This document shows, one piece after another, positions 1 through 49,488 of a stretch of 49,629 nt of DNA. The number at the start of each line of letters is the position of its first letter. Position 1 is the stretch's first letter. The notes beneath the pieces are model-generated. The model made no database searches and was not told the origin of the DNA. It was given only the letters and a program-made list of their open reading frames with translations. The position numbers were made by a program, and so were the translations under genes. The stretch comes from Klebsormidium nitens. Its lineage: Eukaryota; Plantae; Klebsormidiophyceae. The stretch spans positions 1-49,629 of the forward strand of contig DF237583.1 of assembly GCA_000708835.1 (NCBI GenBank), in the 5' to 3' direction.

Positions 1-21
1 GCAGTCCCCATTAGGAGCAGT

Positions 22-75
22 ATGGTGAAAATTCTGGAAGCACCCGTACTGCGTGTCCTACTTGTGTCGACTCAA
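22..75 (+). pseudogene. Truncated, recoded duplicate of the glycosyltransferase 5' end
   Basis: ATG at 22 reads MVKILEAPVLRVLLVSTQ; the gene at 1509 reads MVKIVEAPTLRVLVVSTH (14/18 aa identical). Similarity then ends and the frame stops at 166-168. Confidence 0.85.
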
Positions 76-246
76 GATCCAGGGCTATCCTTGAGGGGGC
101 ATATGTATGGCAATCCGTCAGTGAGGAGTCTTGGCATCAAGCTCGTATCATGTCAAAAACCACACTAATTGCATTCTCATGGTTTAGCATGAAGCCCGCC
201 ACACTTAGGGACAAGACATTAGGCAGAAAGAGCACGTTCAAGAGAG

Positions 247-1440
247 ATGGCTGATTCCAGTGTTACCACCAGCATGACGATCAGTGTGAAGCGCAAGCAC
301 AGCCAGATAGATGATCCCAAGCAACTCGTGTGTGGATTTGCTGGCTGTGGCAAGGTGTTTACTAGCCAACGGTCATTCACACGCCACATGAACTCGCACT
401 CGGAGCAGTATGCGCCATTTTCGAGCTACCAGGGATGGAAGCAGCATTTCGAGTACAAGCATATTCACGGGCTCCCAGATGGCCGGGTCTGGAGCAGCAA
501 AGCCGGGCGCTTCTTGAATGGACACTTTCAGGGTGGTTACGTTCACTTGGGGATCGAAGGGAAGACTATCCAGCGCCACCGCTTGAACTTCGAGATCGCC
601 AACGGGCGTGCCATTCTTCCTGGGTTGGATATTGACCACATCGTCCCTTCAAAGACGCCGGACGACAGCTGGGCGAACCTGCAGGAGATTACACGGCCGG
701 AGCACAACATCAAGACTCGTGCGGACAATCCGGGGATGGCCAAGAAGTGTAGTGTGACCAAGGGCTTCCCAGTATTCGTACAGCACATTGCGAGCGGCAA
801 AGAGGATGAGTACGCTTCGATCAATGCTGCCGCTCGAGCGTTGGGGCTAAACGTGGCAGTGGTGGCGTTGCGTGCCAAAGAGGGGTCAAACACGGAGTAC
901 AAGGGATACGTGTTCCGCAGGTGCCCGGTGCACGTGGCCTCGCAGGCGGACAGGCCCGATGAAGAATGGATGGACGCGAAGCTTGAAGGGCGGGTTCTCG
1001 ATGGCATACGGGTCAGCAGCCTGGGCCGCGTCCAGCTTCGCCACGGGAGGCGCACGGAGGGCAAGATTGTGCATGGGCGGCACAAGGTCAATCTTCGGAT
1101 CGACGGGAAGGACGTTGAAGTCTTTGTCTACAATCTCATGGCCCACACGTTCATTGGACCGCCGCCCAGCAACAAGCACACGGTCGACCACATCGATGGA
1201 ATCTGCAACCACGACGTGATTGGCAACCTACGCTATGCGACCAAGATTGAGCAGGGGCGGAACATGAAGAACAACAGGGCCGTTAGCAAGCACGATCTCC
1301 AGGGGACGCTTTTGAAGACGTATGGCACCATGGCAGAGGCCGCCGAGGACAGCAATCTGTCTTACGAGCGGATGAAGTATGCAGTCAGGACGGCCCGCAG
1401 CACGGCAACCGGTTTCCAGTGGAAGTGTGTGAGGCAGTAG
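247..1440 (+). CDS. HNH homing-type endonuclease (C2H2 finger, two HNH domains, NUMOD1-like modules)
   Basis: CGFAGCGKVF..HMNSH finger; DIDHIV...WANLQEITRPEH and TVDHIDG...GNLRYAT HNH motifs; EYASINAAARALG and TYGTMAEAAE NUMOD1-like segments. Confidence 0.85.
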   Translation: MADSSVTTSMTISVKRKHSQIDDPKQLVCGFAGCGKVFTSQRSFTRHMNSHSEQYAPFSSYQGWKQHFEYKHIHGLPDGRVWSSKAGRFLNGHFQGGYVHLGIEGKTIQRHRLNFEIANGRAILPGLDIDHIVPSKTPDDSWANLQEITRPEHNIKTRADNPGMAKKCSVTKGFPVFVQHIASGKEDEYASINAAARALGLNVAVVALRAKEGSNTEYKGYVFRRCPVHVASQADRPDEEWMDAKLEGRVLDGIRVSSLGRVQLRHGRRTEGKIVHGRHKVNLRIDGKDVEVFVYNLMAHTFIGPPPSNKHTVDHIDGICNHDVIGNLRYATKIEQGRNMKNNRAVSKHDLQGTLLKTYGTMAEAAEDSNLSYERMKYAVRTARSTATGFQWKCVRQ

Positions 1441-1508
1441 ATGTACGGGTTGGAGGCCGCGTTCCATATAACCTTTATCTTTTGCCAGCATTGAAGCATG
1501 ACTCCTCT

Positions 1509-2750
1509 ATGGTGAAAATTGTTGAAGCGCCCACCCTGCGCGTGCTAGTCGTCTCAACCCATGTCTCGCAAGTTACAGGATATTCCAAGGTCTCCTGGAA
1601 CCTGCTCAAGCAGCTTGGAAAGTTTGACGATCTCGAGGTCATCCACTACGGGTTTCAGCACTTTAACAACGACTCCGACCCTCAGCAGAAGCGCCTCAAG
1701 GCCCTACCAGAGTCGATCATTGTGCATGACGCCGCGAAAGCCGAAATTCCCTTTGAGCAAGGCTTTGGGATCAAGAACTTTCGGGACTTTGTGAGGCTGA
1801 GCCGGCCGGATGTCATTGTGATCTTCAACGATGCCTTCATTGTGGCCAAGTTTCTGAATGAATTGGCCATTGAGCCGCGCGCGTGCCCGGGGGCTCGCAT
1901 CATTGTCTACCTCGATACGGTGTACCCTTTCGTCAACCCCGACCTGTTGGCAATAGTCGACCGGGGTGCAGACCACATCATTGCATTCACAGAGTACTGG
2001 AAGCAGGAGTTGCTGGCTCAGGGTATAACCAAGCCAATGAGCACGCTCATGCACGGGTTTGATCCTGATCAGATATACCCTACGGAACAGCCTTCAAAGC
2101 CGGCCGATGCACCCATGATCTGTCTGAACCTGAACAGGAACCAGCCCCGCAAACGCTACGACCTGATGGCGATCACCATGGCCCTCGTGTGCGCAAAGAG
2201 GCCCGATGCAAACGTGCGCTTCGTGGCCGCGACCGACCTCAAGGGCGGTGCTTGGGACGTTCCTAGGCTGTTTGCAAGGGAGCTATGCAAGCGGATGGAG
2301 CCGGAGAAGGTGTCCCACTTCTTGGGACACCTTCTGACCGTCAAGAATCCGAGCGCCATGACCGACGAGGACGTGAATAAGCTCTACAACGAGGCGGATG
2401 TTGGCCTTAATCTTGCACAGGGCGAGGGCGTGGGGCTTACATCCCTCGAACATGCAGGAGTGGGCAAGCCCCAGATCTGCGGCCGTTTAGGCGGCTTTCA
2501 AGAGTACTTGGACGACAGCTGCGCCACACTGCTCGATGTAAAGGGCCGTGAGTACATTGATTCAAGGGATGTGATCGGAGGGGAGGCGTCGATCATCGAC
2601 CCTCAAGATGCATGCGATGCTATTTTGAAGTATCTGGACGATCCAGAGCTGCGTGCGAAGCACGGCAAGGCGGCTCGCGAGAAGGTGCTCAAGTACAAGT
2701 GGGAGGACGTTGGCAAGGCTCTCTACGATGTGATTGTGGAGTCCTCTTAG
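1509..2750 (+). CDS. GT-B glycosyltransferase (GT4-like)
   Basis: LNLNRNQPRKRYD and EGVGLTSLEHAGVGKPQI motifs. ATG at 1509 preferred over the track start at 1419, which overlaps the HNH gene. Confidence 0.85.
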   Translation: MVKIVEAPTLRVLVVSTHVSQVTGYSKVSWNLLKQLGKFDDLEVIHYGFQHFNNDSDPQQKRLKALPESIIVHDAAKAEIPFEQGFGIKNFRDFVRLSRPDVIVIFNDAFIVAKFLNELAIEPRACPGARIIVYLDTVYPFVNPDLLAIVDRGADHIIAFTEYWKQELLAQGITKPMSTLMHGFDPDQIYPTEQPSKPADAPMICLNLNRNQPRKRYDLMAITMALVCAKRPDANVRFVAATDLKGGAWDVPRLFARELCKRMEPEKVSHFLGHLLTVKNPSAMTDEDVNKLYNEADVGLNLAQGEGVGLTSLEHAGVGKPQICGRLGGFQEYLDDSCATLLDVKGREYIDSRDVIGGEASIIDPQDACDAILKYLDDPELRAKHGKAAREKVLKYKWEDVGKALYDVIVESS

Positions 2751-3535
2751 AGGTCGTTCACCTTGGGAGCTAAAAGGAATCGCAGCCTGCCCAAGCTAGC
2801 AACACTGAAGATCATTAGCAATGGGAACGACTGCCGCAAGCAGAGGGTCACCTGCCGACAGAGCGACGAGCTCTTGCTAAATAGGTTCAAGTATCGCAAT
2901 GCGTACGTATTGTCAATCACGAGGTCCTTATTCTCTCCTTCTACCTCCTCATTAGCCATGTTGAGCGTGGTCTCTTGAGTGGCAAAGTCGCCGGAGCAGC
3001 TGAGCGTGAGAGTGCTGCCATTGAGCCTGAAGCGGCAGGACGTCCCAATGGCTGACATGTCCCTCATCAGCCTCTGGAAATCCACGGCGCTCAGCGAGAT
3101 CGTAGAGTCCATCTTGAGGCGCGGCACGCTGATCGGGTCCTCGTCAATGTCCAGCAGCTTCAAGGAGTACTTGGTGCTGCTCTTCCTTTCGGGGCTGTCT
3201 ATCCTGATCCCCAGCTGGTGCGGATCTGCTGCGGTGAGATACATGCACAGGACGTCGTTGCTGGTGACCGACTTTACAAGCTTGAAGAGGGATGTCATAT
3301 TCACGCCCAGGACCAGTGGCTTTGTACAGCTGAAGCTCTCAAAGTTTACCGCATCAAGCTCGCAATGGATCATAGAGACCTTTGAGCTGTCCATTGTAAT
3401 GAGCTTTATCCCCACGCCGGGCGTCACGGACAGGTTGACGTCGGTGAGCCATTCTTTGCACAGCTCAATCAGCGAGCGGAGGGCTGTGGCTTGGACGGTC
3501 TTGAGTTCAAAGAGGAGGTCTGCAGGTTGTTCCAT
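2747..3535 (-). CDS. PCNA: Proliferating cell nuclear antigen (sliding clamp)
   Basis: ELKTVQA..., MDSSKVSMIHCEL, LGVNMTSLFKLVK, YSLKLLDIDED, LRFLLAPK; 262 aa, intronless. Confidence 0.95.
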   Translation of the reverse strand: MEQPADLLFELKTVQATALRSLIELCKEWLTDVNLSVTPGVGIKLITMDSSKVSMIHCELDAVNFESFSCTKPLVLGVNMTSLFKLVKSVTSNDVLCMYLTAADPHQLGIRIDSPERKSSTKYSLKLLDIDEDPISVPRLKMDSTISLSAVDFQRLMRDMSAIGTSCRFRLNGSTLTLSCSGDFATQETTLNMANEEVEGENKDLVIDNTYALRYLNLFSKSSSLCRQVTLCLRQSFPLLMIFSVASLGRLRFLLAPKVNDL

Positions 3536-4065: not shown

Positions 4066-4247
4066 TGCATCAGTGAGATCAGCAATTTGCATCAGTTGTT
4101 TGCATCGGTAAACTGCATCAGTGGGTTGCATCAGTCATCTGCATCAGTCATCTGCGTCAGTGAGCTGCATCAGTAAGTTCCATCAGTACGTTGCATCAGT
4201 ACGTTGCATCAGTAATTGCATCAGTGAGTTGCATCAGTGGATTGCAT
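4066..4247. repeat. 13-bp-period array of TGCATCAGT with variable 4-nt spacers
   Basis: 13 full copies (3 with one mismatch) at 4066, 4088, 4101, 4114, 4127, 4140, 4153, 4166, 4179, 4192, 4205, 4217, 4230, plus a partial copy. Confidence 0.95.
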
Positions 4248-4718
4248 GGCCCAATGGTCTTGAGACGCGACTTTCAGACCAATGCCGCGTCACCAGTCTA
4301 GGGGTCCGGCTCAACAGTCATGTAACGCGCGTTGTCTNNNNNNNNNNNNNNNNNNNNNNNNNNNNNNNNNNNNNNNNNNNNNNNNNNNNNNNNNNNNNNN
4401 NNNNNNNNNNNNNNNNNNNNNNNNNNNNNNNNNNNNNNNNNNNNNNNNNNNNNNNNNNNNNNNNNNNNNNNNNNNNNNNNNNNNNNNNNNNNNNNNNNNN
4501 NNNNNNNNNNNNNNNNNNNNNNNNNNNNNNNNNNNNNNNNNNNNNNNNNNNNNNNNNNNNNNNNNNNNNNNNNNNNNNNNNNNNNNNNNNNNNNNNNNNN
4601 NNNNNNNNNNNNNNNNNNNNNNNNNNNNNNNNNNNNNNNNNNNNNNNNCAATGAATCACGGCCCAATGGTCTTGAGACGCGACTTCAGTACTGGTGACGC
4701 GTCACCAGTCTAGGGGTC
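4248..4718. repeat. Direct repeat unit on both sides of an N gap, with a 20-bp palindrome
   Basis: GGCCCAATGGTCTTGAGACGCGACT at 4248 and 4659; GCGTCACCAGTCTAGGGGTC in both copies; perfect palindrome ACTGGTGACGCGTCACCAGT at 4690-4709. Confidence 0.85.
4338..4649. other. Assembly gap
   Basis: Run of N. Confidence 1.
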
Positions 4719-7100: not shown

Positions 7101-9344
7101 ATGGCTCCGGTGTTCCTCCCTGTGCTGCTTCTGTTGCTCTCCGTCCTGCCGACCCACTGTACATTCCTCGACCCATCGACGGCTCAGAGCTTCGGCTATT
7201 GTGATATCATGCACCGCCCAGACGGATCGGTGGCCGCCACAAACAGGGAGCACACGTTCTCCGGGCCTAGCTGGGACGTATCAAAGCTTGTTCAGGGAGG
7301 CACCACCTACACTCTGAACACAGAGTGCACGGTGGCTATCGGGGCGGGCACCCTGAAGATGAGCATCGCTGAGCACCTGGGCAGCATAGCATGGAACCCA
7401 AACATGGCCTCTGCTAACGTATCACTTGGCAACTGGGCAACCCTCTCGGTCAATTATGGGGTCGACGGGGCGTTCAATCCTTCAAAGGGGGACAAGCTCA
7501 TCGTATACGTGGAAGGAGCCGCTGCCGGAGTGGACCTGATCTGCAGGTCAGCAGCACCACTGATGCCGGCCGGCACTAGCGGTGGGGGCCTCAAGCTAGC
7601 GGCGGCACGGACAAACCGTTTAATCGGGACAGCTGTCGATGACCAGAAGCTAAGCGACCCACAATACGCCCGGGCATTAAAAGCTGACTTTAACTTTGTG
7701 ACCTGTGAGAATTGCATGAAGTTTGACGCAACGGAAGCTAATCAGGGGAGTTTTAGCTTTGGGGGAGGTGATGCGCTTGTCGCCTTTGCTGCCCAGAACA
7801 ACATGACGGTCAAGGGACACTGCTTGGTGTGGGGCCAGCAGCTTCCGGGCTGGATTGCGGGTGTTGGGGACCTTCAAAAGGCAATGGTCGACCATATAAA
7901 CGGGGTGGTAACGCACTACAAGGGAAAGGTAAAATACTGGGATGTTCTGAATGAGGTGATCGATGATAATCCCGGCAGCCAGGACGGGATGAAAGGAACA
8001 GTGTATCAGAGCCGTTTGGGCACAGGCTACGTCGAGGCTGCCTTCCGTGCGGCCCATGCAGCCGACCCGGACGCTCTGCTGCTCGCCAATGATTACGGGG
8101 TAGAGCTGATGACGGACAAGTCACAGAGGTTCTACGACATGGTCAGCCGCCTGGTGAAAAAGGGGGTCCCTATCCACGGCGTGGGCTTCCAGAGCCACTT
8201 TGATGGCACAGAAAAGCTGACGGACATGGCGACAAACATGCAGAGATTTGCGGATCTCGGGCTTTTCATCATGATCTCCGAGCTGGACGTGCAGTACCTC
8301 AAGTTTCCTGGCAGCGATCAGGACAAGCTGAAGGCCCAAGCAGACTTCTACAAGAAGGTGGTCTCCATCTGCATGTCACAAAGGGCTTGCAAGGCAATAA
8401 CCACATGGGGTGTTCGTGACTCTGACTCGTGGTTGCTAACTCAGATTGGCCCCAATGAGAAACCGCTGCTGTTTGACATGAAATACACAAAGAAGCCGGC
8501 GTACAGCGCAGTGCTTGACGCCCTGAACGATCAGGCACCTGCGACCACAACGCGCAGGCTGCTGCAGGCGGAGCAAGGGACCGCTCCGCTGCCGTTGGGG
8601 AGCAGCTCCCCAGTTTCGGTCACTTTCTATGAGAGTCCGGGCATGCGGTGCAGCGACGGCTTGGGGATGTGTGGATTTGGGAATACCGCAGCAGGAGGAA
8701 CGGACTTTTTGAAGAACGCCTTGTACCCGTTGCATGCCGCTAGTGGAAACTTCGAATTCTTAGGGGGTTGCGGAGCCTGCGGGGTTCTTCATTACAATGG
8801 CCTGGCACGCGGTTACACGATCACGGATGTTACCGATGCAATTGACAGCCTAGGGGAGCGGGACTGGCCACCCAAAAGAGCGCACCTTGATCTTTGTTGT
8901 TCTGAATTCAGTTACTTCCAGTCCCTCGACAAGGGGTACGGGATCGATTGTTCGCAAGGAGGAGAATTTACTGGGGTTTGGACCCGAGTATCTTGCGAGA
9001 CCATGGGCCACCCAAACTGGAACAATGATGGAGCAGTTGTCAGGATCATGAAGTGGAATCGATATGCGGGGGCCTTGTATGTTGCACGATTGCCTGGGGT
9101 AGGTGAGGTTGAGTCAATTGACTTTTTAACAAGCAATGGGGAACACTTTCCAGGAAAAAAGGTGGAGGGTTGGGGAGCATATTACAGTTCAAACACGGAC
9201 CTATCTGGCAAGGGTTCGGTTGGTTTGAAAGTCACACTTGTTGATGGCTCTATATTTGACTGGTCCATGGCCTTCCCCCTGCCTGACTTTGTCCTTTGGC
9301 AGGATGGTAACGTGTACATGCTACCTCTGCCTACGAGTACATAG
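7101..9344 (+). CDS. Secreted GH10 endo-xylanase fused to an expansin-like (DPBB plus CBM63-like) module
   Basis: Signal peptide MAPVFLPVLLLLL; GH10 motifs ENCMKF, KGHCLVW, WDVLNE, GVGFQSH, ISELDV, TWG; RRLLQ linker; then GMCGFG..GGCGACG..HLDL..WTRVSC. Confidence 0.85.
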   Translation: MAPVFLPVLLLLLSVLPTHCTFLDPSTAQSFGYCDIMHRPDGSVAATNREHTFSGPSWDVSKLVQGGTTYTLNTECTVAIGAGTLKMSIAEHLGSIAWNPNMASANVSLGNWATLSVNYGVDGAFNPSKGDKLIVYVEGAAAGVDLICRSAAPLMPAGTSGGGLKLAAARTNRLIGTAVDDQKLSDPQYARALKADFNFVTCENCMKFDATEANQGSFSFGGGDALVAFAAQNNMTVKGHCLVWGQQLPGWIAGVGDLQKAMVDHINGVVTHYKGKVKYWDVLNEVIDDNPGSQDGMKGTVYQSRLGTGYVEAAFRAAHAADPDALLLANDYGVELMTDKSQRFYDMVSRLVKKGVPIHGVGFQSHFDGTEKLTDMATNMQRFADLGLFIMISELDVQYLKFPGSDQDKLKAQADFYKKVVSICMSQRACKAITTWGVRDSDSWLLTQIGPNEKPLLFDMKYTKKPAYSAVLDALNDQAPATTTRRLLQAEQGTAPLPLGSSSPVSVTFYESPGMRCSDGLGMCGFGNTAAGGTDFLKNALYPLHAASGNFEFLGGCGACGVLHYNGLARGYTITDVTDAIDSLGERDWPPKRAHLDLCCSEFSYFQSLDKGYGIDCSQGGEFTGVWTRVSCETMGHPNWNNDGAVVRIMKWNRYAGALYVARLPGVGEVESIDFLTSNGEHFPGKKVEGWGAYYSSNTDLSGKGSVGLKVTLVDGSIFDWSMAFPLPDFVLWQDGNVYMLPLPTST

Positions 9345-9346
9345 AA

Positions 9347-10534
9347 CTACTCAGTCTCTCTCTTGCGCTTTGCCTTCCTCTGCCTCGCACCCTTGGTTTG
9401 GCCCTGGTCCTCCCAGCTGTAGCCGTCATAGAACAGGTGCTCGACGGTCACTTCGCGTTCAGGCACGTGCGTGAGGTGGTAGTTCAGGCGCTCAAGGTAA
9501 ACCTTCATTCGTGCTTCCCACATGGCCTGATCCCTGATGACGGGCACCCCGAGCTTGTTGTACTTGAAGCAGCTCGGGTGCTTCAGGCCATCAGCAGATG
9601 TGAAGCTGTCTGGGTTGAAGCGCAGCTGCACCTGGGGCCGGTTGCCAGCATCCTGAAAGAGCTCCATGAGCCTCTTGTTGTCACAGGAGTAGTTGCTGGA
9701 AGAGTGCTGCTCCTCGTCGCACTCCGAGTGTACGGTGTGGGTGTACACATCGACGAAGATGTCCGGCCTCCGCGCCGAGCACCCCCCCTGAAGCTTCTTG
9801 TCGAAGGTGACCTGCGCCGTGTCTGGGAGAACGCCTGCTGCCTTGATGTGGTCAACGAAGTGTTGCTCCTTGATTTTGTAATTCCGAGAGACCTTCTCGT
9901 CTGGGAAAAGGAACACAAAGCAGCGAAGACAATAGCCCTTGTTGCGGTTCTGCACGATCGTGCTGCATCCGTTGAGACACTTGTTGTGCGCAACGTCCTC
10001 CATGCCCTCAGTCTTACAGTGTGCACAATGAGTGCGTGGACCACCTATGAGGCCAAAGCTCGGGATTCCCCTCTGGCAGAAGCACTTTTTAGTAACAACG
10101 TTAAGCATGTCCTCAGTTTTGCATATGGCACAATGGGTAGGCTGTCTCCACTTGAGCCCGAAGCTGGGCAGCTGTTGCCCACAGTAGCACTTCTTGTGAA
10201 CCAAGTCCACCATGCCTTCGCCCCTGCATTCGGCGCAGTGGGTGGGGCGCTCGTCTCTGAAGCCAAAGCTTGGCTGCCCGCGCCCGCACACACACGTTTT
10301 GTTTTTGACATCCACCATACCATCCAACTTGCAGCGGGCGCAATGTGTAGGACTCTTTCCACCATTCCCAAAGGTTGGCTGCCCTTGTTTGCATGCACAT
10401 CTCTTGTTCTTGACATCAATCATGCCCTCCAGCTTACACTTCAAACAGTGGGAGGGCTTGTTTCCTTCAAACCCAAAGGTAGGCCGAGCCCGCTTGCACC
10501 TGCACAAAGGCCTCTTCCGTTGTACTTTTTCCAT
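9347..10534 (-). CDS. EsV-1-7 Cys-rich repeat protein (5 x 35 aa) with C-terminal Vsr/PD-(D/E)XK-like endonuclease
   Basis: Repeats CxC...PxFG...PTHCxxCKxxGMxDV; then RRPDIF...SECDEEQH...QLRFNPD. Confidence 0.85.
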   Translation of the reverse strand: MEKVQRKRPLCRCKRARPTFGFEGNKPSHCLKCKLEGMIDVKNKRCACKQGQPTFGNGGKSPTHCARCKLDGMVDVKNKTCVCGRGQPSFGFRDERPTHCAECRGEGMVDLVHKKCYCGQQLPSFGLKWRQPTHCAICKTEDMLNVVTKKCFCQRGIPSFGLIGGPRTHCAHCKTEGMEDVAHNKCLNGCSTIVQNRNKGYCLRCFVFLFPDEKVSRNYKIKEQHFVDHIKAAGVLPDTAQVTFDKKLQGGCSARRPDIFVDVYTHTVHSECDEEQHSSSNYSCDNKRLMELFQDAGNRPQVQLRFNPDSFTSADGLKHPSCFKYNKLGVPVIRDQAMWEARMKVYLERLNYHLTHVPEREVTVEHLFYDGYSWEDQGQTKGARQRKAKRKRETE

Positions 10535-23221: not shown

Positions 23222-23545
23222 CGCGAGATGCCTCTTTCGTAAAGCGAGAACCGACCGCTCGTCCGCCCGGATCTTCCAGTGAACATGGTTGTGATTAACC
23301 CAATTGCCAAAGCTGGCATAGATCTGGTAGTCGGGCAGCTCTATAGCCTCCATGAAAGCAGCGACCTCTTGAAACGAAGCCCGAAGCTCTTCGCCCGAAA
23401 GATCGAGCGTCGAGGCCTTGTGTACATGTGGTGTGTAGATCAGAAGCGGCCGTCCCTTGAGATCAAAATGGAATCGCCCGTGCCTCCCATCCGCAATCAC
23501 CAGGCTGCGAGCATATTGTGTCAAGTGACAGGTGTAGCAACTCAT
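22982..23545 (-). CDS. HIT-like protein
   Basis: SCYTC N-terminus, LIYTPHVH, HNHVHWKI histidine triad; the tail overlaps the antisense gene. Confidence 0.6.
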   Translation of the reverse strand: MSCYTCHLTQYARSLVIADGRHGRFHFDLKGRPLLIYTPHVHKASTLDLSGEELRASFQEVAAFMEAIELPDYQIYASFGNWVNHNHVHWKIRADERSVLALRKRHLASDRLFAQGGAHSTSNSREEHREVVSRQVGEAPQSEAAARAAAEGAPEEGGCAVSGMEHLGRIVRAVDGKGTEECLGRRG

Positions 23546-23602
23546 CAAAGGCCCACCGCGAATTTCGGGTTGAATTGGGTGGAGAAAATCAGCAGCTCTG
23601 AT

Positions 23603-25372
23603 ATGGCGCAGCGGTGGCTCGCATGGCGCTCGTGGTTTGGGCCGCCTCTCATCACCGCGGCATACCTGGGTGTTGCCCAGTTTGGAAGGCTCCTGGTGGA
23701 CAGCAAGACCCATAGTGCGTCCGTCTGGCCTCCTTCTGGGGTTGGCCTGGCAGCTGCTCTCCACTTTGGCAGGCCATCAGCAGCTGTAGGCATTGCGGCC
23801 GGCTCACTATTGCATCTCCTCTTGATGTACCTGACGACCGAGAGGTACCACCGGACAATCTTCCTCGCAATCTCCCCAGCTTTTGCGGCAATCAACGTCC
23901 TGGAAGCTCTTGTGAACTGCACACTCATCCAGTTCGTATCAAAACAAAGGTCGGGGTGGTTTGAAACTTGGCGGGGAGCGGTCCTTTTCTTTCTTCCGAT
24001 CCCGTTCGCCCCCCTCGCATCTGCTTACCTCATTGCTTTCTTACTTGCCCTTGTCAATTTTGTCCCAACAGCTTACGTGGCCAAGTATGGTGCAGCAATA
24101 TGGCTGGGCCGCCTCGGTGGCATATATGCTTTCACGCCAGCACTGACAAACCCGTGGAACGGACTGTTTCGGATTCATCAATGGAAGGTGATGCTGACAT
24201 TTGCCGGCATTGCAGTAGTATTCTCATTCACTTTCATGAACGGTTGGGGGCTTATAACGTCTTCTCAACCACGACTGTTCATTTTTCCAGCCACTGCTAT
24301 GCTAGTTCTTGCAACACCTGCTTTGGGTAATCAGGAGGTCACTGGGGCAATCTTTCTCGCAATGGCCATGGTTATTGTCGGAACCGCCCGGGGGATGGGT
24401 CCATTCAGTGGCGACAACCACTCGCCAATCTTTTGGCTGACGTTGGAGCAGATCTACATATGCGTCACCAGTGCCAAGACGATCTGTATTGCAGCCTTGT
24501 CACGTGAAAAAGACGACAAGCACGTGCAACTGCAGAGGGTCAACGAGTTGCTCGAGACGCGGGTGCAGCACAGAACAAGCGAGTCAACGGCTGCGATTGA
24601 CCGTGCGGAGGAGGTTGGTCGGCAGAAGCTGGGATTCGTGAGGCATGTACGCGAAGAGATACGCGCGCCTCTGGTAGGGATCCAACGGCTGTGCTTTACT
24701 GAAAGCCCTCTCGACATTGACTCCCTCCGGGCACGGGTGGCCGGCACGGCAGAGCTGCTGGTCACCGTTCTGGACGACCTGGTCGACGTGGGGTACGGCG
24801 AAGGTGGCAGGCTGTGCTCTGAGATGCTGAAGTTTGAACCGGAGGCGCTCTTTAGGCGTGCACTGGACCTGGTCAGGCCGGATCTATCGAAGGTGGCCAC
24901 CCTTGAAGCTGACAAGGACCTTCCTCGGTATGCCGAAGGCGACATGAAGAAGCTGCAGCGCTGCCTGGTTGCGATGATCAACTGCTGCTGCACCGGTGAT
25001 GTGTGTTCGGTCCGGCTTGGCATCCTGTGCATGCCGCCCGAGATGATGGCGAACGGCGTCCATTCCCGCCACAGGCTGTGGATACGCTTCGAGGTGCATG
25101 CAGAGCCTCACGGGGGGCAAGCAACGGACCTCGAGGGCGGCTGGGTGCTCAACCCATACGATCCAAAAACCTCTGTGGATGACCGCCCCGTGGTGCTAGC
25201 TGACGAGATGGGTGGACGGCTCTTCCGAGCCCGCGACGGCCTCAGTGCAAGGCTGGAGGTCCCTTTAAGACGCACAATGGACAACAACTCCCTGGGGTCC
25301 AGTGTCCGCTTCCGTGAGGCCCGAGCGCAAGCCATTCTGGACGGGCTGGAGCTGAGCCCGCAGAAAGAGTAG
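23603..25372 (+). CDS. MASE1 sensor fused to a degenerate histidine-kinase core
   Basis: VWPPSGVGLAAAL MASE1 motif and many TMs. H-box reads VREEIRAPL (no His). GDMKKLQRCLVAMI lacks the N-box Asn. Confidence 0.75.
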   Translation: MAQRWLAWRSWFGPPLITAAYLGVAQFGRLLVDSKTHSASVWPPSGVGLAAALHFGRPSAAVGIAAGSLLHLLLMYLTTERYHRTIFLAISPAFAAINVLEALVNCTLIQFVSKQRSGWFETWRGAVLFFLPIPFAPLASAYLIAFLLALVNFVPTAYVAKYGAAIWLGRLGGIYAFTPALTNPWNGLFRIHQWKVMLTFAGIAVVFSFTFMNGWGLITSSQPRLFIFPATAMLVLATPALGNQEVTGAIFLAMAMVIVGTARGMGPFSGDNHSPIFWLTLEQIYICVTSAKTICIAALSREKDDKHVQLQRVNELLETRVQHRTSESTAAIDRAEEVGRQKLGFVRHVREEIRAPLVGIQRLCFTESPLDIDSLRARVAGTAELLVTVLDDLVDVGYGEGGRLCSEMLKFEPEALFRRALDLVRPDLSKVATLEADKDLPRYAEGDMKKLQRCLVAMINCCCTGDVCSVRLGILCMPPEMMANGVHSRHRLWIRFEVHAEPHGGQATDLEGGWVLNPYDPKTSVDDRPVVLADEMGGRLFRARDGLSARLEVPLRRTMDNNSLGSSVRFREARAQAILDGLELSPQKE

Positions 25373-48213: not shown

Positions 48214-49488
48214 ATGGCTTACAAGTGTCACTGCGGAACTCGGGCAAACTTCGGCATTGTTGGCGGTAGAGCCACGCGCTGCAAGAAGCACAAAGATGTG
48301 GGCATGGTAGACGTCAAGAATCGACGCTGCCGCTGTGGCAAGAGTCAGCCCTTTTTTGGATTCTTGGGAAAGAGAGCAGAGTGTTGTTCTGGGTGCAAGC
48401 TTCCCAACATGGTGGATGTGCGAAGCCCTCGTTGCAGATGCCGGAAGAGCCATCCAAGTTTTGGTTACGTGGGCAAGAGGCCCGAGTGCTGCTTGAAGTG
48501 TAGACTCCCCGAAATGGTTGCTCTTGACAGTCGTCGTTGTGCTTGCGGGCAAGCACGACCAAGTTTTGCACTCCACGGAGAGAAGGCAGGCTTTTGCGTG
48601 AAGTGCAAAACACCGGCAATGGTTGATGTGGTAAGTCCGCGTTGCCAGTGCGGGAAAGCTCAACCCAGCTTCGGCTTTCCAGGCAGTAAGGCCGCTTGTT
48701 GCACAGATTGCAAAAGTCCAGGGATGGTTAATGTTGTTAGCCCGCACTGTGCATGTGGTAAACATCAACCGCGCTTCGGGCTCCTCGGTGGGAGGGCAAC
48801 CTGTTGCAGCGAATGCAAAGAGGACGAGATGATAGATCTCACGCAACCTCGGTGCTCGTGTGGAGAGATCGCGTACTACGCGCTCGCGGGAGGCGAAGCG
48901 GTCTGTTGCAGAGGCTGCATGACACCTGATATGGTCCACACGAGGAAGCACACGTGCGTTGTCGGCTCTTGTGAGCCGATAAAGTCAGTGCGCTTTGCCA
49001 ACACGGCCTGTTACGAGTGTAGCGGAAAGGTCCCGCAAAAGATGTGGGAGCGCAAGGTTGTGAAGGAGTTGAAGCGCCTCGGTATCGAGTATAGCTATTA
49101 CGATGTGAGCGTCCCGTGCTCCCAGGCCAAGGGGATCAAAGCATTCCGGCCGGACCTCATATTTGCACTTCAGGACTTCGTGGTCATCCTCGAGGTGGAC
49201 GAGAACGAGCATCGGGCTTACGAGCTGTCGTGCGAGGTGGGGAGAGTTGGTGATATCAAGGATGCCATCGAGCTGCCCCTCCTCCTCATCCGCCTCAACC
49301 CCTCCGAGGCGCGCATCAAGGCACTGGGCGAGACAATGAAGTGGGCTTTCTCCATGGGAGAAGCTGTCAAGGCACAGGAAGCGGGGCTCATGCTTGCATA
49401 TCACGGGTACTCGGACAGCAGGAGGGCCGAGCTTCACGAGCAGATGGTCAGGCAGAACGGCTTTGCATACGAAACGATTGTTTTGTAA
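48214..49488 (+). CDS. EsV-1-7 Cys-rich repeat protein (7 repeats) with C-terminal Vsr/PD-(D/E)XK-like endonuclease
   Basis: CxCG..QPSFG...CCxxCK.P.MVDV repeats; FRPDLIF...VILEVDENEHRAYELSCE...IRLNP. Confidence 0.88.
   Translation: MAYKCHCGTRANFGIVGGRATRCKKHKDVGMVDVKNRRCRCGKSQPFFGFLGKRAECCSGCKLPNMVDVRSPRCRCRKSHPSFGYVGKRPECCLKCRLPEMVALDSRRCACGQARPSFALHGEKAGFCVKCKTPAMVDVVSPRCQCGKAQPSFGFPGSKAACCTDCKSPGMVNVVSPHCACGKHQPRFGLLGGRATCCSECKEDEMIDLTQPRCSCGEIAYYALAGGEAVCCRGCMTPDMVHTRKHTCVVGSCEPIKSVRFANTACYECSGKVPQKMWERKVVKELKRLGIEYSYYDVSVPCSQAKGIKAFRPDLIFALQDFVVILEVDENEHRAYELSCEVGRVGDIKDAIELPLLLIRLNPSEARIKALGETMKWAFSMGEAVKAQEAGLMLAYHGYSDSRRAELHEQMVRQNGFAYETIVL

Follow-up and report, generated by a model that had tools for sequence, protein, structure and literature searches.

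An HNH endonuclease gene between two diverged copies of a glycosyltransferase gene start in Klebsormidium nitens giant-virus DNA: a probable product of nuclease-linked repair

At the very start of a 49,629-nt stretch of DNA from the alga Klebsormidium nitens (contig DF237583.1 of assembly GCA_000708835.1; the whole stretch is called the window here), a gene for an HNH endonuclease lies between two diverged copies of the beginning of a glycosyltransferase (GT) gene. One copy is an orphan stub upstream of the HNH gene and the other forms the first 18 codons of a complete GT gene downstream of it. The window is giant-virus DNA that has been endogenised in K. nitens. We consider it probable, at roughly 0.6, that the stub, the spacer that follows it, the HNH gene and the GT gene are together the product of nuclease-linked double-strand-break repair between two diverged virus genomes. 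The coordinates of these elements are collected in Table 1.

The two copies (22-75 and 1509-1562) form a direct repeat, and each opens with ATG, the translations being MVKILEAPVLRVLLVSTQ and MVKIVEAPTLRVLVVSTH, respectively. They are identical at 40 of 54 nucleotides and 14 of 18 amino acids. A repeat finder reports them as family D8 (21-74 and 1508-1561, 76% identity), the sole long direct repeat that touches the locus. Six codons (7, 11, 12, 15, 16 and 17) differ silently, exactly the pairs listed in an earlier note made from this DNA; missing from that list are four codons with replacements, 5 (L/V), 9 (V/T), 14 (L/V) and 18 (Q/H), all of them conservative. The overall layout is as that note had described it. 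The upstream copy is truncated, in that its open reading frame (ORF, 22-168) leaves GT homology after codon 18; the HNH ORF lies between the copies; and the downstream copy runs on as a full GT of 413 aa.

The differences between the copies are concentrated at silent sites. The 14 nucleotide differences fall 3/1/10 on codon positions 1/2/3 (P=0.004 against an even spread), and by the Nei-Gojobori method there are 9 silent changes at 15.5 sites (pS 0.58) and 5 replacement changes at 38.5 sites (pN 0.13), giving a dN/dS of about 0.1 (Fisher P=0.0007). At this pS, silent sites are near saturation. The bias indicates that both copies diverged inside working genes. The proposal that they represent two diverged coding alleles, and not a fresh target-site duplication, is thus borne out by the third-position bias and the low dN/dS. 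The earlier note had named, as the opposing case, a decayed local duplication with dN/dS near 1; we find a ratio of about 0.1 and no homology beyond the 54 nt, and neither a recent local duplication nor decay in place can account for most of the differences.

The homology of the two copies has sharp edges. Its first base is the one preceding the ATG and its last belongs to codon 18; the 21 nt 5' of the stub do not align with the 68 nt 5' of the GT start, extending the repeat collinearly past nt 75 does no better than chance (52% of shuffles are equally good), and 76-246 shows no resemblance to the GT in any frame. Locally, 76-246 comes closest to the rest of the GT gene in a near-match of ∼20 nt between 158-178, in the spacer, and 1971-1991 (GT codons 155-161), with two mismatches and one single-base gap. 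Its score is reached by 2-7% of shuffles, and it is probably a chance match; alternatively, it could be a second scrap of a broken allele.

Comparisons with relatives, which were made at the protein level throughout, indicate that the stub is genuine GT sequence and that its match goes beyond chance. Its residues follow the conserved N-terminal pattern of the GT family, MVKI[VL][ED]AP..RVL.VSTH, and it is identical at 16 of 18 residues to a metagenomic homologue, P0004. When the GT was compared with the whole window by tblastn, the stub was the sole extra match (E=0.004), and among 48 gene-end queries, drawn from the 24 ORFs of the viral block, it was the sole orphan copy of a gene end (E=3e-5). 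Moreover, it stands directly upstream of the HNH-GT pair and in the same orientation. Similar small proteins were sought for the whole ORF at 22-168 and none were found, in a search that is uninformative. The present promoter of the GT gene is presumably carried by the 68 nt that separate it from the HNH gene.

The intervening gene had been called an HNH endonuclease, and Pfam, PHROG and Foldseek all agree, with I-HmuI as the best structural match. The 397-aa protein has a C2H2 finger at residues 28-51 and HNH modules at about residues 95-160 and 280-345. Pfam HNH_3 matches it in two stretches with 34.8 bits (cut-off 24.8), and PHROG HNH families match residues 45-158 and 238-348. For the DNA-binding element, the Pfam I-HmuI_NUMOD-like family scores 22.8 bits, below its cut-off of 27, PHROG families cover the NUMOD region at residues 164-224, and in the predicted model a pair of helices, resembling a NUMOD helix-turn-helix, follows each HNH module. 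The residues H131/N144/H153 and H315/N327/N339 are conserved in an alignment of the HNH family with about 15 relatives of the same size. The AlphaFold (AF2) model has a mean pLDDT of 75, and its sole significant Foldseek match is I-HmuI (1u3e; E 4.3e-9, 27% identity). On these comparisons, the ORF encodes an I-HmuI-like HNH endonuclease of full size for its family. It is free-standing, with its own start and stop; a search of 1-3000 with Rfam found no group I or group II intron at E≤1, and an RNA fold test found nothing unusual (z-score +0.98). I-HmuI is a nicking enzyme, and the tandem HNH modules of the window protein suggest one nick per strand. We note that two nicking modules in one chain, behind a single C2H2 finger, could make a double-strand break as a monomer.

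Two relatives of this gene show that the family is dynamic in this genome. P0121, on a 3619-nt Logan contig, is an HNH copy 92% identical to that of the window. Its middle is frameshifted, residues 248-303 following the frame of ORF 872-1219, which overlaps the HNH gene in the window; this copy, from another data set, is probably decaying. In K. nitens, the 605-aa gene model P0141 (GAQ93140.1) runs together two distinct members of the HNH family, the first cut off near its C-terminus and the second without its N-terminal third; these two nuclease genes are nested or recombined.

The GT gene itself is whole and presumably functional, and its product belongs with the GT4 (GT-B fold) glycosyltransferases of the giant-virus clade. 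Three Pfam families (GT4-conflict, Glyco_trans_1_2 and Glycos_transf_1) match it above their cut-offs. We found 399 homologues, the closest of which have 91-69% identity and lengths of 411-417 aa; homologues occur in giant-virus-like metagenomic contigs and in Tetraselmis virus 1. The K. nitens copies other than that of the window are 91%, 56% and 52% identical to it. A metagenome scan returned only GTs at 35% identity, and scans of IMG/VR returned GTs at 37-41% identity and one distant HNH protein, none with HNH-GT adjacency or shared neighbours.

The HNH and GT genes are linked at loci other than that of the window. A second K. nitens HNH-GT locus is found on a 7680-nt contig that starts inside the HNH gene. 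Its product, P0001 (GAQ93198.1), opens with the last 48 residues of the HNH protein and continues with the GT from residue 36. Because the join fits a predicted intron running from GTGAGG (1429-1434 in the window) to CAG (1611-1613), this fusion is an annotation artefact. It comes from a eukaryotic gene finder run on viral DNA and leaves GT codons 1-35 of that copy out of view. In metagenomes, the GT homologue P0005 (71%) and the HNH homologue P0122 (62%) are each on a Logan contig of 5605 nt, very probably the same one, which would be a further case of linkage. By comparison, contigs of 39, 41 and 93 kb carry GT homologues, but none of the HNH-family matches is on a contig of equal size, and HNH relatives are also found on contigs without this GT. 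Since adjacency is seen at some loci and no HNH pairing is seen for the 39-93 kb contigs, the presence of the HNH gene beside the GT is probably patchy.

Comparison with GAQ93198.1 also reveals a step in identity along the locus. In the tract next to and including the end of the HNH gene (1294-1880), only 2 of 138 aa are changed, while the distal GT has 24 changes in 289 aa (Fisher P=0.004). The HNH C-terminal 49 aa contribute one 3-nt indel and one substitution. In the GT alone, there are no changes in residues 36-124 (0/89) compared to 24 of 289 in residues 125-413 (P=0.002), and family variability along the gene does not explain this step. Homing with co-conversion of the flanks leaves a tract of identity proximal to the nuclease (Edgell et al. 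2010, PMC2988022), and the tract here is a candidate for one left in this way. The nuclease thus looks mobile, as judged from these protein comparisons.

We propose that the locus arose as follows. In one GT allele, a break would have occurred some 54 nt into the coding region, immediately ahead of the STH.SQ.TGY motif. The right side of this break would have been repaired by homology in the GT gene, copying from an HNH-bearing genome, and the copying would have imported the HNH gene, the short intergenic region and the 5' part of the donor's GT. The left side, comprising the first 18 codons of the broken allele, would have been joined without homology upstream of the HNH gene, to persist as the orphan stub, and the GT gene would stay whole after the repair. 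STH.SQ.TGY is the most conserved motif of the GT family, and a break just before it would be of a kind typical of homing targets. We infer that the nuclease made the break, cutting near codon 18; the stub-type allele (22-75) might then be the one cleaved by the HNH enzyme, and the in-gene copy might be resistant to cleavage.

A different and more tentative version of nuclease involvement is that the stub, instead of being a singular scar, marks one edge of a self-propagating homing cassette, made up of the spacer, the HNH gene, a promoter and recoded codons 1-18, that inserts into the GT coding sequence at codon 18. If so, the host gene would be rebuilt downstream of the insertion without an intron or an intein, the recoded codons would serve to hide the target and also to make recombination between the two repeats less frequent, and the cassette would be the 5'-end counterpart of the mobile-ORF (mORF) gene hybrids of fungal mitochondria. 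The earlier note had proposed that a 54-nt replacement start was all that was supplied, and this is not supported by our results: the near-identical tract reaches at least GT codon 124, and the gene falls into the same clade in trees of its two parts. In those trees, of GT codons 19-150 and 151-413, the window GT groups with P0001, P0002 and P0003 both times, and the placement of the window GT and GAQ93198.1 beside P0002/P0003 has support of 86/90 and 95/98.

Table 1. Elements of the stub-HNH-GT locus (window coordinates)
Element	Position	Strand	Basis or remark
Orphan 5' stub of a GT allele, ATG + 17 codons	22..75	+	14/18 aa to in-gene copy, 16/18 to P0004
48-codon ORF: stub, then 30 unrelated codons to stop	22..168	+	No Pfam family
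Spacer from stub to HNH start	76..246	+	No significant GT similarity, no RNA family, no unusual fold
Intact 397-aa endonuclease gene, C2H2 + two I-HmuI-like HNH modules	247..1440	+	Pfam, PHROG, AF2/Foldseek
Candidate co-conversion tract relative to GAQ93198.1	1294..1880	+	HNH C-terminal 49 aa + GT codons 36-124
Intergenic region from HNH stop to GT start, 68 nt	1441..1508	+	No alignment with the 21 nt 5' of the stub
In-gene copy, first 18 GT codons	1509..1562	+	40/54 nt to stub
Full-length GT4-type glycosyltransferase, 413 aa	1509..2750	+	Pfam; all family-invariant residues present

As to which of the two copies is native, the in-gene copy matches P0002, of the gene-body clade, at 15 of 18 residues, and the stub matches P0004, of the sister clade, at 16 of 18; L10 is common to the stub, the in-gene copy and the sister clade, and the diagnostic positions conflict. 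With the junction codon left out, the replacement divergence of the stub is 3 of 17 residues. Alleles 23-31% apart would be expected to show 3-4 replacements, and alleles at the 8% level of the K. nitens copies would show 1.1, so the stub fits best with an allele diverged by 23-31%. The stub may be the start of the resident allele, in which case the HNH gene and at least 370 nt of the GT were imported; or it may come from a more distant lineage and record an older event. Under either scenario, the replaced tract, if any, would be longer than 54 nt.

Several points weigh against the repair reading. The GT body shows no clade-level mosaic, because both part-trees give the same clade; 18 codons are too few to tell which copy is native; and divergence of the stub at the 8% level would still be compatible with the replacement count at P of about 0.1. 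The patchiness of the HNH gene was judged from equal contig sizes and not from sequence, the identity tract is drawn from proteins only and from a single partner (GAQ93198.1), and the HNH tree does not resolve a lineage specific to the GT site. Finally, the stub begins after only 21 nt of the window, whose start probably coincides with a scaffold end, and its left context is missing. This last point is also what favors a trivial explanation, that the first 75 bases come from another GT allele and were misjoined upstream of the HNH gene during assembly. The locus does assemble poorly, as shown by the second K. nitens copy, whose contig breaks off within the HNH gene. However, the 75/76 junction has no sequence similarity that would mislead an assembler, and the other GT N-termini visible in K. 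nitens (P0013 and P0015) are unlike the stub; we therefore hold a misassembly to be very unlikely.

Recombination without any part for the nuclease would explain the stub as a scrap of another GT allele that was put upstream of the HNH-GT pair illegitimately, with the nuclease as a bystander, either among co-infecting viruses or among endogenous virus copies after integration in the alga. Rearrangement among viral inserts does occur, since K. nitens has several diverged GT copies and several HNH paralogues, including the fused or nested P0141. Yet the scrap is the 5' end of precisely the gene downstream of the HNH gene, pointing the same way and starting exactly at its ATG, and no other orphan gene end was found in the viral block. 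The nuclease-proximal identity tract, moreover, is a prediction of homing; we regard this explanation as unlikely. Tandem duplication of the GT 5' end within the locus, followed by decay, would give a direct repeat in the same orientation, as observed with the copies 1487 nt apart, but it is extremely improbable given that the changes fall mainly at silent sites (dN/dS about 0.1, Fisher P=0.0007; pS 0.58) and that the stub is still a good family N-terminus, when a non-coding relic would change evenly over codon positions. Equally hard to credit is a self-splicing intron that contains the HNH gene, with 22-75 as exon 1 and exon 2 from 1563 onward. Joining ...ACT CA (73) to T GTC... (1562) would restore the family STHVSQ motif, and introns with homing endonuclease genes and partial exon duplications exist in fungi (PMC7902536); against this, there is no Rfam group I/II match in 1-3000 at E≤1 and no unusual RNA fold, and splicing is unneeded, because the downstream GT ORF is complete and has an ATG of its own. 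Nuclease-linked repair remains the preferred reading.

The closest known parallel is in fungal mitochondria, where mORF hybrids have been described for Glomus atp6, atp9, cox2 and nad3 (Beaudet et al. 2013, PMC3630166) and, in work that the same paper cites, for Allomyces macrogynus atp6 (Paquin et al. 1994). As in the window, an endonuclease ORF lies between two diverged copies of the end of a neighbouring gene, one copy keeping the gene whole in frame and the other orphaned beyond the endonuclease. In both systems the copies differ mostly at silent sites, which in the mORF hybrids is read as import from another lineage. The mORF hybrids, however, affect the 3' end, carry LAGLIDADG or GIY-YIG endonucleases and are mitochondrial, whereas the window has a 5' end, a double HNH protein and a giant virus. 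The arrangement in the window is the mirror image of an mORF hybrid at the 5' end of a gene, with an HNH nuclease in a giant virus. With a 5' end as the duplicated part, the gene has to be given a start codon and presumably also a promoter. A further difference is that the orphan copy was shown to be native in the mORF hybrids, while in the window 18 codons do not decide this.

Free-standing nucleases of phages provide a second comparison. In T4-like phages, SegF, SegG and MobE (PMC2988022; PMC2790892) are also encoded by free-standing genes between other genes, and in phage intronless homing a conserved neighbour gene is thought to be cut in nuclease-free genomes, with co-conversion of the flanks and a patchy presence of the nuclease, as is probable also for the HNH gene here. 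Phage homing normally leaves no duplicated gene fragment, unlike the window, and cleavage, inheritance in mixed infections and co-conversion have been measured in phages, whereas here the corresponding steps are inferred from protein comparisons. A free-standing nuclease gene can also lie inside a conserved coding region, as do mobE in nrdA of Aeh1 and mobA in T4 gene 60 (PMC2988022); there both pieces are needed and reassemble as protein, while in the window nothing is missing from the downstream gene, which leaves the 18-codon stub redundant. I-HmuI, from Bacillus phage SPO1, resembles the window HNH protein in its HNH_3-type motif and, probably, in the NUMOD-like DNA-binding element that follows. 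It differs in being intron-encoded with one HNH module, where the window protein is free-standing with two HNH/NUMOD-like modules in tandem and an N-terminal C2H2 finger.

Homing endonuclease genes usually spare the host gene by residing in introns, inteins or intergenic sites, and in giant viruses the discussion of such genes has centred on introns and inteins (PMC5871332). Entry of a nuclease at the front of a gene, with a replacement start downstream, would be a further solution to the same problem; to date, the only documented cases of a replacement end concern gene tails in fungal mitochondria. In a limited search of the literature, we found no description of the 5'-end arrangement. If our interpretation is correct, nucleases would drive the exchange of gene segments between co-infecting giant-virus lineages and would leave scars that can be dated. 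The locus also offers a natural double-HNH, zinc-finger nuclease whose target can be guessed, namely the conserved 5' region of a viral GT gene.

Genes of nucleocytoplasmic large DNA viruses (NCLDV) have been reported in Klebsormidium assemblies (PMC5294986). The closest named homologues of both the GT and the HNH protein are K. nitens proteins, and the neighbours of the locus encode PCNA, a patatin-like lipase, a GH10 enzyme, an EsV-1-7 cysteine-repeat protein and a UvrD-type helicase. By-eye inspection of the regions upstream of the 24 viral ORFs revealed no obvious shared promoter motif. The window contains three N gaps. One of them (4338-4648) is flanked by a 62-nt direct repeat with 85% identity (4245-4306 and 4657-4718), and a 13-nt tandem repeat, AT-rich relative to its surroundings, lies at 4078-4220. 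EsV-1-7 cysteine-rich repeats are found in the viral ORF at 9347-10534 and again at 48226-48837, near the far end of the window; because they recur there, viral-type sequence may resume near that end. Within the viral block, the ORF at 7101-9344 encodes a GH10 glycoside hydrolase, with a weak match to a carbohydrate-binding module, and a 695-aa ORF at 23285-25372 has a MASE1 membrane-sensor domain; both are unusual cargo for a giant virus.

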